DNA of 64,000 bases. Origin: Corallochytrium limacisporum Hawaii (lineage: Eukaryota; Protista; Pluriformea). A program made the translations under genes and the position numbers. The stretch spans positions 62,001-126,000 of the forward strand of contig PDIP01000026.1 of assembly GCA_002811645.1 (NCBI GenBank), read 5' to 3'. Position 1 is the first letter of the stretch. The number at the start of each line of letters is the position of its first letter. The notes beneath the pieces are model-generated. The model saw only the letters and a program-made list of their open reading frames with translations, did no database searches and had not been told where the DNA came from. Positions 31,796 to 38,991 of this stretch are shown one piece after another.

Positions 31796-33205
31796 ATGAA
31801 CAACCAAACAGTAACCATGGCTAATAGTATTAGCTTCAAAGGTGAGTCCATGGACATGGACACTCTGTTTTTATACTTCGTTGCAGTGGTCGTGGGGATG
31901 CAGCTGCTGCGCATGATCATGGTCCCCATTCGGTCTCGGTCAGTAGCAAACCCTCGACTGTTGGGAAGACAGAACGTGCTTCTGGTGATAGCACACCCAG
32001 ACGACGAGTCTATGTTCTTTGGTCCGCTGATGGCACAACTTAGTCCAAAGGCAAATGGCCAGAGCAAAGCCAAGGACAATGAGGATCAACACATGCCGAG
32101 TGCCCCAAGGTCTCCCGGAGCCAGTGTTCCTTTCGAGGATATTGAGGATCCGAATGAAGATGGATACATCCTCCCTAAATTGTACGTACTGTGCTTAAGC
32201 ACGGGTGATGCCGATGGCAAGGGCAGTACTCGGGTTCAGGAGCTGAAGAAGGTCATGGAACTCTGGGGGTACGATCCTGAGGAACAGCTGCAGATCCTCG
32301 ATGACCCCATGCTTCCCGACAGCATGACAGCCCAGTGGCCACAGACAATTATTCAGCGATATGTACGGACAGCGGTGCAAGCATGGCACGTTGACACAGT
32401 CATTACCTTTGATCAAGGAGGCATATCGGGCCACTTCAATCACATTGCCATTCACAAGGCACTTGTGCCGCCCGGTACGTGGTCTGCGAAAGACTATGAA
32501 GCTCTGCCCGTCACCGAAAAACGCAGAAAGGCCGAGCAGCTGAGACGACAACAGCAGAAGACAAAGTCCAAGGCAAAGAATCGGTTGGGCATGTCCCCAA
32601 ATGGCCACACGGGAACACCGCCAGCAACCCCAGACAGCAAGGGGCCGCTGACCCGTAGTCGCAGGACAGCTGTTGTCAATGGCAAGTCACCCGGTTCCAA
32701 GGACATTACTATGTCGTCACGACCGAGAAAGGGAGCGTCCAAGACAGCGACAGCTAAGACAGCAACGTCAAAAATAGCAACATCTAAGCCGTCCCTCGCA
32801 GTTAGCGAGAACCATGAACCATCCGCGACGTCCCTTAGCAATTCAAACACGCCCCGACTGCCGCTAGGCAAGTCCGTGCGAATCTTATGCCTACGCAGTG
32901 AACTGCCGTTCCTGAAGTACACAGGCGCGATAGAGCTCTTCTTCCGCACCCTGCTCTTCCGTAAGGGCATGAGCGTATGGACGGATGCGAGACACATCAG
33001 CGTCGCCGTGAACGGTGTGCTCTTTGGTACCGGCTGGACGTGTCGGACGGCCATGTTCACACACTGGAGCCAAATGGTTTGGTTCCGCTGGCTGTATATT
33101 TTCTTTTCGCGGTACATGACAGTGAATGACTTTGTAGTCATGGTCGAAGGCGATTCGTGGCACCAGAATGCCATCGATGTCGCAGCGCATGGTCCTGATG
33201 AATGA
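31796..33205 (+). CDS. PIGL: N-acetylglucosaminyl-phosphatidylinositol de-N-acetylase (PIG-L/GPI12) with long insertions; true start may be a downstream Met
   Basis: N-terminal transmembrane segment, VLLVIAHPDDESMFF, LCLSTG, ITFDQGGISGHFNH and C-terminal HWSQMVWFRWLYIFFSRYM.VN. Confidence 0.93.
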   Translation: MNNQTVTMANSISFKGESMDMDTLFLYFVAVVVGMQLLRMIMVPIRSRSVANPRLLGRQNVLLVIAHPDDESMFFGPLMAQLSPKANGQSKAKDNEDQHMPSAPRSPGASVPFEDIEDPNEDGYILPKLYVLCLSTGDADGKGSTRVQELKKVMELWGYDPEEQLQILDDPMLPDSMTAQWPQTIIQRYVRTAVQAWHVDTVITFDQGGISGHFNHIAIHKALVPPGTWSAKDYEALPVTEKRRKAEQLRRQQQKTKSKAKNRLGMSPNGHTGTPPATPDSKGPLTRSRRTAVVNGKSPGSKDITMSSRPRKGASKTATAKTATSKIATSKPSLAVSENHEPSATSLSNSNTPRLPLGKSVRILCLRSELPFLKYTGAIELFFRTLLFRKGMSVWTDARHISVAVNGVLFGTGWTCRTAMFTHWSQMVWFRWLYIFFSRYMTVNDFVVMVEGDSWHQNAIDVAAHGPDE

Positions 33206-33698
33206 GGGACTTCAAAGAGTATGGTCTCGACACTGTAACAATAAAGCATGCGAACTACTGATGACAACGCTATGGTCATCACTTATCATTCAACCAAAAA
33301 ATGTTGTGGTAGTTTTTCACTAGTATACGTTTGTTCGTTTGATGTTATATCTACTTTGGAAATTCGTAGGACTCAATCTCATTTTTGCAAAAGAATTGAA
33401 AATTTGGAAGTGAGTAGACAGATGCTCATTCCTCTCCTTTCGGAAAGGGTGTTTTCAAAAGTCTTTCTGATCGTGCTCCCTGTCCCATTCACGACAAAGG
33501 AATATGGGCAGAAAGTCGACTCGTTGATTTAAAATGCTTTGGAAAGCGTGCGCAGAATGTTGTTGGAAATGTGGAAGAAAGGTTGTTGTCTTTGAAATGA
33601 ACACAAATAGGGTGGATAAACAAAATAAGGGTGGTTGAATGAGGCAGGATGTAGATGAAGGGAAAGATCACGAAGATGAGACATGGGAACATGGGACC

Positions 33699-35078
33699 TT
33701 AAGACGAAGCATTGGCATTTGCATTGGCCTTAGTTGGTGTAGCTCCGGCGGGAGCTGCACCTTCGGCGGCTTTGCGGCCCTCGGGCGTGTCTGCACTGCC
33801 CGTCAGGCTCTTGATCGCATTGAAGGCCTGGGACGCAATGTTCCAAACAGAGGTCTGTCCATCCGTTCCTGGCTCTCCGGACTGACCGTCCGGGCCCACT
33901 GCAGCGGCGCTGCCATTGGCAGTGTTGTTGGCCTCTGAGCCGCCCTTATCAGCAGCGATGCGCTTGCTCCTCTTGGGAGTAGGCTCCGCATCGCCCGGGG
34001 GGGCCGGCCTGCGCACCGGGGACGCTTGCCGTTTCTTCGTGGGAGAACCCTTAGTGCCAGTGGCAGCACCACCAGCCGCATCCGCAGCATCCGCCGCACC
34101 CTCCCCATCAGCTGGGGTCTTGGGCTTCTCGTTTGCTGCCGCTCGAGTCTTGCTCGGGGACTTGGGTGCGTTTGTGGGAGACTTGCTCCGTGCCCTAGTA
34201 CTAGGAGAGTTGCCGGCCTCAAGGAATCGGTTGCGCCCACCGGAAACTTCGGCTGTATCCTTCTTTTCCTTGGTCGTATCTTTCTTCGCAGCTGCCTTCT
34301 TGGTGGGTGAAGGGGATTTCTTCGCAGAAGCCTTACCGGCCCTCTTGGCCGATCCAGACTTCTTGGCGGAAACCTTGGACGCAAACGCCGGACGGTCCTG
34401 GTTCTTTGGCCGTCCGCGGGGCCTCTTCTGCGTGGGTACACTGATCTCCGCCTCTGCAGCTTTGCTGATGGCAGTCCGACCCGTCGGGGTATTGCAGACC
34501 AGAGCTTGCTCCAGCAAGGATCCCTGTCCTTTGCCCTTGGCACCTGCAGGTGTGCCTGAACCACCCCTCTTCTGGCCGTCCTGGCCGCTATCTCCAGCGC
34601 TTCCATCATCTTCCTTCTTGGCCTTACCACGAGGCGGGCCACGGGGACTGTCATCCCAGCCCAGCACAACCTGAACCCTGAGGCTCTGCTGCGGCATGAC
34701 TTTGGGCATCTCAGCGGCAGCCTTGTAACGTTCCACAATGTCAGCAGGAGTACTCTCATGCAAAGCCGGATAGTTACCGTCATTGGTGGGGACCCACCAC
34801 TCGCAAATATCTTCTGTTGTTGTGGGATGACTGAGTAAAGGAAGGTCTTTCTTCTTCATAGACTCCTTGGGGTCGACGTCCTTATGCGCAGTTTTTAAGT
34901 GTCGAGGCAAGCGCTTTTTACCAACTTCAATTGAGCACTCTGGGCATCGAGTGGTACGGTGGGAGTAGCGGACGTGGTGCTTTAGCTGATTCAATCCCAG
35001 GACCAAGCGCTGACAAGCAGGGCAGCGCATCAGTCCTTCCCGGGGTGCTCCCTCCGGGATCTCCGCGGGTTTATCCAT
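33699..35078 (-). CDS. Chromatin-type protein with two C2H2 zinc fingers, an AT-hook and a K/A/S/P-rich tail
   Basis: CPAC-x12-HVRYSH and CPEC-x11-HLKTAH fingers; KRPRGRPK AT-hook; several S/T-P-x-K/R sites. Confidence 0.85.
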   Translation of the reverse strand: MDKPAEIPEGAPREGLMRCPACQRLVLGLNQLKHHVRYSHRTTRCPECSIEVGKKRLPRHLKTAHKDVDPKESMKKKDLPLLSHPTTTEDICEWWVPTNDGNYPALHESTPADIVERYKAAAEMPKVMPQQSLRVQVVLGWDDSPRGPPRGKAKKEDDGSAGDSGQDGQKRGGSGTPAGAKGKGQGSLLEQALVCNTPTGRTAISKAAEAEISVPTQKRPRGRPKNQDRPAFASKVSAKKSGSAKRAGKASAKKSPSPTKKAAAKKDTTKEKKDTAEVSGGRNRFLEAGNSPSTRARSKSPTNAPKSPSKTRAAANEKPKTPADGEGAADAADAAGGAATGTKGSPTKKRQASPVRRPAPPGDAEPTPKRSKRIAADKGGSEANNTANGSAAAVGPDGQSGEPGTDGQTSVWNIASQAFNAIKSLTGSADTPEGRKAAEGAAPAGATPTKANANANASS

Positions 35079-37320
35079 TGTCTAAAGAAAAGGTTGTGTT
35101 TCTTGTTTCTAAGTTCCCTTAAACCCCGGTTGGAAAGATTATCTTACAGTTTTGAAATGCTGTACAAAGAATAATGATCGTTTGATTTGGTTCTAGAGTC
35201 TGGTGGGCGGCATTGTCGCTAGCCTAAAAGTTGAAATTCCAGACTTTCTCCTTGTCACCGAACTGATGAACACATTAGTCCACATTAAGTTTATAATGTT
35301 TACTGATCAGATTACCACCTTATACCTTTAGTATGAGATGTGATAAAGCATCATTCCATGTTCTGCATGAAGTCCACAAGTGGCAGTATTAACTAAAACA
35401 CGCCACCAACATTTCAAAATGTTCCAAAGCCATCACCGGCCGGGAGTTCGAAACTGGCAGAAATCATTTCCTCCCGTCCCTGGAGTTATTCCGTACTGGC
35501 AGCCATAACACACACATACAGCCCAACGCGCACACACACAATGGCTTCACCGGATTGCACAACACTGGGCCCCCCCCCTCCTCCCCCCCCATTCCCCTTG
35601 ATTTCCAAATCGGCAGATGGAGTAAAGCCAATATCTCGAAACCTCCCNNNNNNNNNNNNNNNNNNNNNNNNNNNNNNNNNNNNNNNNNNNNNNNNNNNNN
35701 NNNNNNNNNNNNNNNNNNNNNNNNNNNNNNNNNNNNNNNNNNNNNNNNNNNNNNNNNNNNNNNNNNNNNNNNNNNNNNNNNNNNNNNNNNNNNNNNNNNN
35801 NNNNNNNNNNNNNNNNNNNNNNNNNNNNNNNNNNNNNNNNNNNNNNNNNNNNNNNNNNNNNNNNNNNNNNNNNNNNNNNNNNNNNNNNNNNNNNNNNNNN
35901 NNNNNNNNNNNNNNNNNNNNNNNNNNNNNNNNNNNNNNNNNNNNNNNNNNNNNNNNNNNNNNNNNNNNNNNNNNNNNNNNNNNNNNNNNNNNNNNNNNNN
36001 NNNNNNNNNNNNNNNNNNNNNNNNNNNNNNNNNNNNNNNNNNNNNNNNNNNNNNNNNNNNNNNNNNNNNNNNNNNNNNNNNNNNNNNNNNNNNNNNNNNN
36101 NNNNNNNNNNNNNNNNNNNNNNNNNNNNNNNNNNNNNNNNNNNNNNNNNNNNNNNNNNNNNNNNNNNNNNNNNNNNNNNNNNNNNNNNNNNNNNNNNNNN
36201 NNNNNNNNNNNNNNNNNNNNNNNNNNNNNNNNNNNNNNNNNNNNNNNNNNNNNNNNNNNNNNNNNNNNNNNNNNNNNNNNNNNNNNNNNNNNNNNNNNNN
36301 NNNNNNNNNNNNNNNNNNNNNNNNNNNNNNNNNNNNNNNNNNNNNNNNNNNNNNNNNNNNNNNNNNNNNNNNNNNNNNNNNNNNNNNNNNNNNNNNNNNN
36401 NNNNNNNNNNNNNNNNNNNNNNNNNNNNNNNNNNNNNNNNNNNNNNNNNNNNNNNNNNNNNNNNNNNNNNNNNNNNNNNGGAGGAGGCCAAAGGAGCGGG
36501 GAGCAGGCGAAGAAGACCGGGGCAGGTGTTTTCAAGAGAGAGAGAGAGAGAGAGAAGGGGGCCGCGAATCGAGGCTCAGGCAAAAAAAGTGGGGGGGAGT
36601 AAGGAGAGTCGGGAGCTTTGGGGGGGAGGGGGGAGGGGGTGCGGGAGCCTGACTGACTGTTCGTGAACCAACGGGGTGACAAATTCGATTCGGCACACGG
36701 TGCGTCCTTTTGGCGCCGTCAGCCAGTACTATGGGTATCGTGCACAAGATTCGCTGTCGTGGTGTCTTTTACGGTATTGAAGTTACTGGCACCACGGGGC
36801 GAGAAGCGAACTGGCGTGCCGGCGAACTGTAGAAATGCGCGGGTTCACTGGGGGGTTCGGGATCTGAATATGCAGTACTTTCACTATAGTCGACCATGCG
36901 TTGTCTTACCTATACGTCGCCTTCCGTTTCTTTGTTGTTTTTGTTGTTGTGTTCTCCTCGGGAGGGGGGGCTTTGGGCATACGTACCATAGTGAATGTAC
37001 CGCGATTCAGGTGCGATACGGCCTGAGTGGCCTGGGCATACCGATTTTGTTTTGACTCAATGTTCGTCGCCCCATGGCCTCCCTTGGGAGCTCTTTAGTA
37101 GTGAATAAACTGAGTTTAGTCCCAAGAAAGTTATATCCCCCAGTCCAACCTTGTCGCCTTTATTTTCTATAGTCAGAGATGAATATTTACAGTATCCGTA
37201 TGTAATATGAGTATATCAAAAAGCTTCCGTGAGATGATCGTCCTCTGAGAGCTACGATTGCCAATCTGGCTTGACAAGTTACACAGTGAGAATCACGGAG
37301 CGCCAACGGCGGGGCCCGAA

Positions 37321-37392
37321 TCACTGTGGTGTTCATGGCGCATGACTCATGATCGCGAGTGTGTCAATCGCGGCGGAGATACCAGCTTCTGC
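37321..37392 (-). pseudogene. Degenerate HisKA H-box remnant at the phytochrome 3' end
   Basis: In-frame reading AEAGISAAIDTLAIMSHAP*TPQ* aligns without gaps to the hybrid-kinase consensus [23 protein letters not shown]. Confidence 0.7.
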
Positions 37393-38991
37393 CTCGACGT
37401 TGTCACCCAGAAGATGCTGCGCTTTCTCATTCAGAAGAAAGTCTGTCAGACGCAGGCGAAGAAACTCAGCCTCCCGGAGCTGAATGTCGCTCCAAGGAGT
37501 GCTGGTATTGTGCACATTCTCGTGCCATGGAGCGAAAGACTTGCGAGGATGTAGGGACCAGCTGCCATCCTCATCGATTTGGATGCGCGTTTCGGGGTTA
37601 CCCGCCCAGGAAATGGTCCGCATGACTTCCCCCCGGAAGAAGAGCAGATAGTTCCTATCACCCGGTAGGATAACAGCCAACACACCACTGGCATGCTCAG
37701 TATACTTCACAGCCTCCGGGAAATGCGCAGACAGATGGTCCGTGGAGTATAGACCCCCCAGGTGCTGACCAAACCGTGTGTTTTCATCGGTGTTCATAAT
37801 CCATCGAAGCAGGTCCTCACAGAACTCGGTTGGAGGCACCCTTCCACGAACATGAACCTTACCGTCAATGCTCACGAGAGTGCCGGTGGCCTCAAACACA
37901 TCCATCAGGTCAGCAGTGAACTGTAGCAACTGATCTATGCTGTTCACCTGCGCCCTCTGCCCGTTCAGTGTCCGGTTTAGTTTCTCGTGCTGGCAGTTCA
38001 GGTGCTGGTGAATTGCCTGATAGTCAATCTTCAGTAGCTGCAGACTGCATGCTTGGGCAATGACTTCAAAATGAGATATGGCCTTCTTGCTCAGAGGGCG
38101 CGGAGAGTAATGGTAACAGAGAACTAGACCCCACAGCTTAGTGCCCTGGACAAGTGAGCAGGACATGGTTGCAGAGACGCCCATATTCTTCAGGTATTCA
38201 ATGTGCATCGGAGATACAGAACGGAGTGCTCCGTGGGTCATGTCCATGGGCTCCAGAGCAATGCAATCCTCGCTGACGCGGTATAGCCTACTGTCACCGC
38301 CGTTGACGTTACCGAGCACTCTCACTAGATTCTGGACATACAAGGCGCGAGCCTGGCGCGGAATGTCCGAGGCAGGGAAGTGCAGGCCAAGGTACCGATT
38401 CAAGGGCATCTCAGCAGCCTCGGCGACAACACAGCCGTTACCACTGCTGTCAAACTTGTAAATCATGACCCGGTCATATCCACTTATCCTTTTAATGCCC
38501 ATGACCAGGCTGTCGTAGCATTGACTGGCCTGCGTAGAGTTGAAGATGTCAGAGAGGACGTTGGAGAAGTTCTCAATGAGCAGATCCTCCATGTCGTGAT
38601 CGCATGCTTGGAATTCGATTCCGATCAGTCCATTGCCAGCACGGTAGAGATCGATATCTACAGGTTGAAGCTCATTGTCCTTAAAGGGCAACTTAACGGG
38701 TAGGTTCTTATAAACTTTATAGCGGCCGCTCTTCTGAAATTCCTGCAGGGCATCGCCCAAGCTGTGGCCCATTAGGTTCAGCATGCACTTTCCGCGGTAG
38801 TCCTCCAATTTACCTCCGAGGTGTTCTGTCACATTTTCGGAGACGATTTGGACAGTAAAAGTCGTTGGATGTACTACCACCAATGTGCCATGGGGCTGTA
38901 TACTACGAGGAGTATGCAGAGGAGCCAAATGGTGCTTCTCTACCAGTTCGCTGATGTCAATCCTCTGACCATTCTGCGCTCGCACCACCAT
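37333..38991 (-). CDS. Phytochrome photosensory core (PAS2-GAF-PHY) without an output kinase
   Basis: PLHTPRSIQPHG (PAS2); GYDRVMIYKF, HFPASDIP.QARALY and LRSVSPMHIEYLKNMGV (GAF); WAGNP and PRKSF tongue motifs (PHY). ORF ends at LAIMSHAP*. Confidence 0.95.
   Translation of the reverse strand: MVVRAQNGQRIDISELVEKHHLAPLHTPRSIQPHGTLVVVHPTTFTVQIVSENVTEHLGGKLEDYRGKCMLNLMGHSLGDALQEFQKSGRYKVYKNLPVKLPFKDNELQPVDIDLYRAGNGLIGIEFQACDHDMEDLLIENFSNVLSDIFNSTQASQCYDSLVMGIKRISGYDRVMIYKFDSSGNGCVVAEAAEMPLNRYLGLHFPASDIPRQARALYVQNLVRVLGNVNGGDSRLYRVSEDCIALEPMDMTHGALRSVSPMHIEYLKNMGVSATMSCSLVQGTKLWGLVLCYHYSPRPLSKKAISHFEVIAQACSLQLLKIDYQAIHQHLNCQHEKLNRTLNGQRAQVNSIDQLLQFTADLMDVFEATGTLVSIDGKVHVRGRVPPTEFCEDLLRWIMNTDENTRFGQHLGGLYSTDHLSAHFPEAVKYTEHASGVLAVILPGDRNYLLFFRGEVMRTISWAGNPETRIQIDEDGSWSLHPRKSFAPWHENVHNTSTPWSDIQLREAEFLRLRLTDFLLNEKAQHLLGDNVEAEAGISAAIDTLAIMSHAP

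Follow-up and report, generated by a model that had tools for sequence, protein, structure and literature searches.

A 64,000-nt stretch of the Corallochytrium genome, hereafter the window (G000:C171:62001-126000, from a compact host assembly of 24.1 Mb), carries on its minus strand a gene for a phytochrome that retains the PAS_2-GAF-PHY sensor module and whose reading frame stops two residues beyond the histidine of a degenerate histidine-kinase H-box. Phytochromes are light sensors of plants, fungi, algae and bacteria. Our preferred reading, with a probability of roughly 0.55, is a real nuclear gene that encodes a sensor-only phytochrome, retained and acting through an output independent of the kinase. 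The features on which this reading is built are listed in Table 1.

Table 1. Features of the truncated phytochrome gene and its 3′ side (window coordinates)
Feature	Position	Strand	Extent and basis
Truncated phytochrome CDS	37336..38991	-	552 aa, single exon, ATG at 38989-38991; ORF list, translation, Pfam, AlphaFold2, codon usage
His20 at the biliverdin-Cys position	38932..38934	-	BLASTP against the paralogue, conserved columns
PAS_2	38614..38928	-	Residues 22-126, PF08446, E 4e-14
GAF (bilin pocket)	38035..38517	-	Residues 159-319, PF01590, conserved and invariant columns
PHY	37426..37956	-	Residues 346-522, PF00360; W-A-G 462-464 and PRKSF 482-486 intact
H-box remnant AEAGISAAIDTLAIMSH	37342..37392	-	Residues 534-550; matrix, register, P0206 match, helix in model
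Degenerate H-box continuation	37321..37341	-	GCG CCA TGA ACA CCA CAG TGA (A P stop T P Q stop); translation, codon distance
Non-coding 3′ flank	36480..37320	-	No kinase remnant, open frames of at most 79 codons, single copy in genome
832-N run (scaffold gap)	35648..36479	.	The window holds six such runs (35-832 bases)

The ORF list and the translation of window positions 37201-38991 (minus strand) gave one long frame, which together with its TGA spans 37333-38991. Upstream of the ATG the frame stayed open for 7 codons only and no coding-like frame was found, indicating that the gene consists of a single exon. The GC content at the three codon positions of the ORF was 0.59/0.37/0.61, and its relative synonymous codon usage (RSCU) correlated with that of the neighboring genes at r = 0.69, within the range of those genes (0.33-0.82). 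The neighbors are eukaryotic, encoding an Aladin-type WD40 protein, PIG-L and a zinc-finger-like (C2H2-like) protein. A look-up of the exact 552-aa protein in public assemblies returned no record.

Pfam analysis identified PAS_2, GAF and PHY (E 1e-41 for PHY), in this order, and no other family. The scores were 53.6, 41.6 and 142.8 bits against gathering thresholds of 21.4, 22.4 and 27 bits, and they equaled or exceeded those of a full-length paralogue encoded in the same genome (125.4 bits for its PHY domain). All 30 invariant columns of an 82-sequence alignment were kept; the conserved residues include D209-I-P, H263 (the His260 equivalent), Y178, Y266, R224, R257, W462/G464 and P482-R-x-S-F. 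In 154 relatives, 82 columns reached at least 85% conservation; the truncated copy kept 72 of these (88%) and the paralogue 75. The relatives themselves kept 78 at the median and 73 at the 5th percentile, and none kept fewer than 69. The AlphaFold2 model had a mean pLDDT of 90.1 and a pTM of 0.88, showed a β-hairpin tongue, and predicted an uninterrupted helix from residue 502 to residue 550, ending at His550.

The bilin-pocket and tongue motifs were present with one exception, Tyr293, which replaces the equivalent of DrBphP His290. The bacteriophytochrome motif C-x-x-E-P-I-H was not found upstream of PAS_2. BLASTP against the paralogue aligned LVEKHHLAPLH with LLQCDLEPIH, placing His20 where the bilin Cys stands; this Cys (column C20, nearly invariant) is conserved in 97% of the 154 relatives, and the first Cys of the truncated protein is residue 69. 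Glu23 and Gly29 of the same region were replaced by Ala and Arg, respectively. Met262 occupies the GAF Cys site of plant and cyanobacterial phytochromes. Since His20 and Met262 stand at the two canonical sites, covalent bilin attachment at either of them is excluded. An upstream exon was considered as a source of the Cys and was ruled out, the Cys position itself falling within the ORF. The missing attachment cysteines and Tyr293 weaken the assumption that the protein is a normal light sensor, and the loss of the Cys, Glu23, Gly29 and the His290 equivalent could mean that the constraint on the chromophore pocket was relaxed. Non-covalent bilin binding appears plausible from the sequence. Cys-to-Ala mutants of Agp1 and DrBphP retain biliverdin binding and photoconversion, and work by Vuillet et al. 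from 2007 reportedly describes chromophore-less bacteriophytochromes as redox sensors in Rhodopseudomonas. The genome also contains two heme-oxygenase matches, one full length (G000:C272:25262-25894, minus strand; E 6e-45, in a 262-codon frame) and one partial (G000:C175:245601-245954, minus strand; within a 479-codon frame), both of which are possible candidate sources of biliverdin for the two phytochromes.

We then consider how the protein ends. Its C-terminus is ...AEAGISAAIDTLAIMSH-AP-TGA, and reading on past the stop in the same frame gives ...NVEAEAGISAAIDTLAIMSHAP-stop-TPQ-stop (in a longer extract, ...LLGDNVEAEAGISAAIDTLAIMSHAP-stop-TPQ-stop). The codons CAT GCG CCA TGA ACA CCA CAG TGA run from 37344 down to 37321 on the minus strand; the histidine is residue 550, the first TGA (37333-37335) lies 2 residues beyond it, and a second in-frame TGA follows four codons past the first. 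This string and its frame, as given in the initial annotation, were reproduced by our translation, and the arithmetic of its proposal that four single-base changes would restore ELRTPL is right. The annotation had further described the frame as ending in a degenerate HELRTPL-type H-box preceded by residues that align without gaps, and both statements hold. A multiple alignment placed ...TLAIMSH gap-free under ...FLANMSHE(L/I)RTP... of the bacterial kinases. His550 lies 68 residues past the P of the PHY-tongue PRxSF, and this distance is 66-68 residues for the phospho-acceptor histidine of bacterial phytochrome kinases. We derived a position matrix from HELRTP-type H-boxes (31 distinct windows), on which the 17 residues up to and including His550 scored +12.0 bits, compared with a maximum of 3.5 bits over 12,689 control 17-mers from the other long ORFs of the window and -6.2 bits for the second-best position within the phytochrome; a score at least as high was reached by 4 of 20,000 shuffles. 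True H-boxes score 20-35 bits on the same matrix, which identifies AEAGISAAIDTLAIMSH as a degenerate remnant.

Among 290 homologues, the best local matches to the last 23 residues were H-box segments, with scores of 42 for the top match (P0206) and 34 for P0078 across 18-20 residues. The tail alone had no meaningful match to Pfam or to PDB sequences, so that the case for an H-box rests on its register and on the purpose-built matrix. Helix 1 is represented by its N-terminal half only; a complete H-box/DHp domain with a phospho-acceptor histidine was not found in the protein and Pfam HisKA is absent. A Cph1/BphP-type H-box (SHDLKEPL) was rejected, its score of -16.8 bits not being distinctive, and the remnant fits the HELRTPL type only. 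Past the His codon, the next 18 nt are separated from ELRTPL by a codon distance of 4 (p about 0.003); across the window 0.27% of all 18-mers come equally near, and in local non-coding DNA 9 of 1998 do.

No trace of a kinase was detected downstream of the stop. When the paralogue and ten histidine kinases encoded in this genome were compared by tblastn with 32001-37400, every match had E>0.1, and a kinase-core HMM applied to six-frame pieces of 33000-37345 and to the read-through frame (X at stops) reached E 0.42 at best. Genome-wide scans found neither HisKA nor HATPase_c anywhere on contig C171, where the gap is a run of N. The N, G1, F and G2 boxes of HATPase_c were found neither in the ORF nor in any frame of 32001-37400. 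Response_reg had no match in the phytochrome ORF or downstream of it, and no hybrid histidine kinase receiver with a phospho-acceptor Asp was recognized. These scans, including the search for HisKA and HATPase that the initial annotation had named as a check, bear out its statement that no HATPase or receiver remnant follows the stop. Because the frame ends a few codons into the kinase, the truncated phytochrome can neither autophosphorylate nor use the usual phosphate relay.

The 853 nt past the stop showed no coding signature: GC at the three positions was 0.56/0.52/0.50, RSCU correlations in the three frames were 0.1, 0.25 and -0.2, and the minus-strand frames, of at most 79 codons, were low-complexity. 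An AATAAA hexamer lies in this flank at 37159-37164 on the minus strand, and the next gene on that strand (33699-35078) is the zinc-finger-like one. Considering that the window has six runs of N with lengths of 35-832 bases, the 832-N run is probably a sized scaffold gap. Its flanks are unique in the genome, and its edges (35520-35647 and 36480-36660) are low-complexity, with poly-C/poly-G tracts, (GA)n and CA-rich runs; it is probably for this reason that the assembly breaks there.

Several ways in which the frame might be continued or might have been interrupted were examined and rejected. Splicing was discarded because the stretch from the His codon to the stop lacks a GT, so that any intron would delete the histidine; moreover, such an intron would interrupt the H-box for more than 850 nt, which would be out of character, as the other kinase genes lie in single open frames. 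A frameshift would not restore the kinase either, the other two reading frames being unrelated to kinases. Stop-codon read-through was dismissed as well, with a second TGA four codons on. Transposon insertion as the cause of the truncation was set aside, given that neither the gap flanks nor the 3′ flank is repeated elsewhere in the genome.

To which proteins is the truncated phytochrome related? An exhaustive search of 1.84 billion representatives returned as its top match the same-genome paralogue, P0121 (942 aa; 35% identity, 309 bits); the other matches were 31-40% identical, and none above 50% identity was found in the databases searched, so that no orthologue is known. In a word-index search, the best non-self proteins (304-966 aa) were bacterial phytochrome kinases with 30-37% identity. 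The initial annotation had suggested looking for full-length paralogues or orthologues, and of these the former exists, on another contig: P0121 is encoded at L003:5302-8127 on the plus strand (G000:C110:230301-233126), between genes for eIF3c and an FtsH-type protease. It comprises PAS_2-GAF-PHY with the bilin Cys present, a HisKA match restricted to profile positions 19-65, and a well-matched HATPase_c, which looks intact and whose N, G1, F and G2 boxes are readable. Its H-box is unrecognizable (best linker matrix score -9): a Ser-rich tract lies there, and ...LLVSEDISMDMKTRLNDIV occupies the place of SHELRTPLN. The C-terminal receiver-like tail of P0121 had no Pfam Response_reg match.

In a maximum-likelihood tree of 156 sensor modules, the truncated copy and the paralogue grouped as sisters with an SH-aLRT of 100, their end branches measuring 0.83 and 0.88, respectively. 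The next relative (support 93) was P0122, a 763-aa PAS-GAF-PHY-HisKA-HATPase protein with ...MSHELRTPL, encoded on a gene-dense metagenomic contig. Considering that the sister is a kinase and that the nearest bacterial relative is P0122, we conclude that the common ancestor of the Corallochytrium pair was a kinase with an HELRTPL-type H-box. Every named neighbor of the truncated phytochrome was bacterial, and no fungal or Physarum hybrid-kinase phytochrome occurred among the 150 best representatives. A bacterial origin of the Corallochytrium phytochromes is thus suggested by similarity ranking, the tree containing no fungal, Physarum or algal sequences. The genome encodes at least 10 further HisKA frames (11 loci, L004-L014), all single open frames of 790-1809 codons, 8 of which have a clear SHELRTP-type (or CHE(L/I)RNP) H-box. 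Judging from these frames, the organism retains a substantial two-component repertoire, although both phytochromes appear to have left it.

According to the initial annotation, an ancestral kinase was cut off by a CGA-to-TGA nonsense change and then decayed. Kinase ancestry is supported by the part of HisKA and the HATPase that the sister keeps and by the domain organization of P0122, and the near-match of AP-stop-TPQ to ELRTPL, in register, fits a stop made by point mutation. Decay in place finds no such support: with 853 nt devoid of any kinase trace or coding signature, the loss could just as well be due to a deletion or a rearrangement located a few codons beyond the stop.

The annotation had also left room for a sensor that evolves neutrally. 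Relative-rate (Tajima) tests with six different outgroups and the family consensus counted 42-62 changes on the truncated branch and 46-58 on that of the paralogue, every chi-square being below 3.84. Since the duplication, therefore, the sensor has not outpaced its full-length sister in rate, and it is not an old pseudogene, in agreement with the end branches, the conserved columns and the host-like codon usage; this comparison cannot date the truncation, and a recent truncation would leave the same signature. Synonymous sites are saturated between the two paralogues, which share 35% protein identity.

We propose the following course of events. A gene for a bacterial-type phytochrome histidine kinase would have been duplicated in the Corallochytrium lineage. 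In one copy a stop would have appeared three codons past the phospho-acceptor histidine, most simply by mutation of the Arg codon in HELRTPL, and the kinase core and any receiver would then have gone. What remains would be the PAS_2-GAF-PHY core with a neck helix of about 28 residues, corresponding to the first half of the phospho-acceptor helix. In bacterial phytochromes the neck helix forms a parallel dimer interface. The sensor, presumably expressed, would have been kept by selection and would work without phosphotransfer. It probably still binds biliverdin, as its pocket residues are mostly intact, and would do so non-covalently, the attachment Cys being replaced by His. Light, received through this biliverdin, would be its input; with impaired photochemistry it might instead sense bilin or redox state. 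The protein may dimerize through the GAF/PHY spine and the neck helix, either with itself or with the His-less paralogue, and its output would consist of state-dependent protein-protein contacts, so that it would serve as an adaptor dependent on light or bilin, or would modulate the paralogue. The roles suggested in the initial annotation, a kinase-independent output or service as a pigment-binding or dominant-negative partner, seem reasonable.

A broader version of this proposal, which we put forward tentatively, is that the lineage left the His-Asp relay twice: one copy, without H-box and receiver Asp, keeps its ATPase, the other consists of sensor and neck, and the two act as a heterodimeric pair or as separate adaptors, a holozoan parallel to plants. 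That the two copies instead form a split kinase, in which the His-bearing stub is phosphorylated in trans by the ATPase of the paralogue, hardly seems credible.

A retained sensor has to be weighed above all against a young pseudogene, in which a recent event (nonsense mutation and deletion, or rearrangement) removed the kinase half, and the sensor is still open for lack of time. We regard this as rather unlikely. The lack of any kinase trace and coding signature immediately past the stop does speak for deletion rather than slow decay. Also compatible with a pseudogene are the loss of the bilin Cys and of the His290 equivalent, changes at several residues of the N-terminal knot, and a slight, non-significant excess of changes on the truncated branch when GAF is taken alone (29 vs 17); nor is there an orthologue through which constraint could be seen. 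However, 1656 nt have stayed open with coding-type GC1/2/3 and host codon usage, the rate has matched that of the full-length sister across the whole post-duplication history, and all the invariant columns and both tongue motifs were kept. In addition, the H-box has lost 9 of 17 consensus residues in its in-ORF part and 4 of 6 in the post-His codons, while the sensor kept 88% of its conserved columns, which argues that the constraint on the kinase ended well before the present and suggests that it was lost long before any constraint on the sensor.

An assembly or sequencing artefact, or hidden exons, would account for the truncation if the kinase lay in the 832-N gap or in unplaced sequence, or if the stop were a base-call error. 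The gap does begin 853 nt downstream of the stop, its 832 bases would be just enough for a minimal kinase core, and the stop is known from the assembly alone. Nevertheless, a single base error would not suffice, given two in-frame TGAs, the A and P after the histidine and other frames that are not kinase-like; an intron would have to exceed 850 nt in a compact 24-Mb genome and would remove the histidine; the stop lies inside the contig and not at its edge; and no orphan, sensor-less kinase fragment was found elsewhere, every HisKA match being in a frame of at least 790 codons. We therefore consider an artefact decidedly unlikely. The interpretation of the tail itself could also be questioned, as it might once have led into a PAS or other output domain, or be a generic signaling helix. 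Some bacterial phytochromes run ...FLAIFEHSPIAV... into a PAS domain, HMMER alignments with XccBphP chains and with two PAS-output proteins, P0195 and P0260, reach the last residues, and the last 12 residues score 29 and 27 against such proteins; the tail alone has no Pfam or PDB match. These scores are exceeded by those of the H-box segments of P0206 and P0078, which extend over 18-20 residues, no control 17-mer reached the matrix score, T-P follows in register past the stop, and the sister gene codes for a kinase, as does that of the nearest bacterial relative, which makes this interpretation very improbable.

If the preferred reading of a retained, sensor-only phytochrome is correct, the gene is a natural experiment on whether phytochrome signaling needs the kinase half. 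Should the truncated protein be expressed and functional, the sensor module alone would suffice in a second eukaryotic lineage, and the paralogue pair would represent two independent exits from phosphorelay signaling. It would also provide a compact natural sensor (552 aa) without the canonical attachment Cys, which makes it interesting for optogenetics and for near-infrared probes. A young pseudogene, by contrast, would be a mere footnote to the paralogue. The question is directly testable, since Corallochytrium can be stably transfected (bioRxiv 10.1101/2020.11.12.379420). Our literature searches found no paper mentioning a phytochrome in Corallochytrium or another unicellular holozoan; that on Corallochytrium and histidine kinases returned a study of GPCR signaling only, and that on Holozoa and phytochromes nothing relevant among the titles and abstracts. 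A search on bacteriophytochromes without chromophore likewise returned nothing pertinent. In a 2018 survey of eukaryotic histidine kinases, the unicellular holozoans were Capsaspora and Monosiga only, and phytochromes were reported in fungi, Physarum, algae and plants (PMC6324907).

Among known systems, the bacteriophytochrome kinases (such as P0122, P0206, P0166 from Limnospira and P0181 from Pseudanabaena) have a PAS_2-GAF-PHY module 31-38% identical to the truncated protein; solved sensor modules such as 6g1y and 6bap match it at E 1e-74. The distance from tongue to histidine and the type of H-box are the same as in the truncated copy, which differs in lacking DHp helix 2, the ATPase, a receiver and the N-terminal Cys, and in its nuclear eukaryotic context. 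The paralogue resembles it over the whole sensor, and both copies have given up a working H-box. They did so in different ways: the paralogue keeps the bilin Cys, the His290 equivalent and HATPase_c, whereas the truncated copy keeps the histidine and half of an H-box, and nothing beyond.

Protein-language-model neighbors of the truncated phytochrome were bacterial PAS_2-GAF-PHY clusters with representatives of 473-602 aa. Two bacterial stand-alone sensors, P0235 (516 aa) and P0188 (546 aa), likewise end soon after PHY and belong to the same 7-member subtree (support 81), but they keep the Cys and have no H-box stub ending at the histidine. We found no characterization of either protein. The P0235 gene (L022:4001-5551, on a 34-kb JGI metagenome contig) is complete, with no kinase nearby and a DUF421 gene next to it. 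P0188 (L020:4001-6350 and L021, JGI metagenome) has a split layout in which the 546-aa sensor is followed, after 32 nt, by a 225-aa HATPase_c gene; it is carried on six contigs, with this layout at both of the two places viewed, and is thus probably not an assembly error.

The kinase-independent output that we propose has a counterpart in plants, where the N-terminal module of phyB signals without the C-terminal half, via light-dependent protein-protein interaction (review PMC10813442). The phyB module is from another lineage and uses a GAF Cys and phytochromobilin, and the C-terminal half is still present in the natural plant protein; phyB has PIFs, and Corallochytrium has no comparable known partner. 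Fungal Fph (group VIII histidine kinases) and Physarum PhyA and PhyB are biliverdin-type sensors of Amorphea with an N-terminal Cys and HK-REC outputs (PMC6324907; PMC4758236), PhyA and PhyB being full hybrid kinases (PMC4758236). The layout of the paralogue (sensor, histidine kinase and receiver-like tail) resembles that of these hybrid kinases, whereas the fungal and Physarum phytochromes, unlike the truncated copy, are full length and have both His and Asp.
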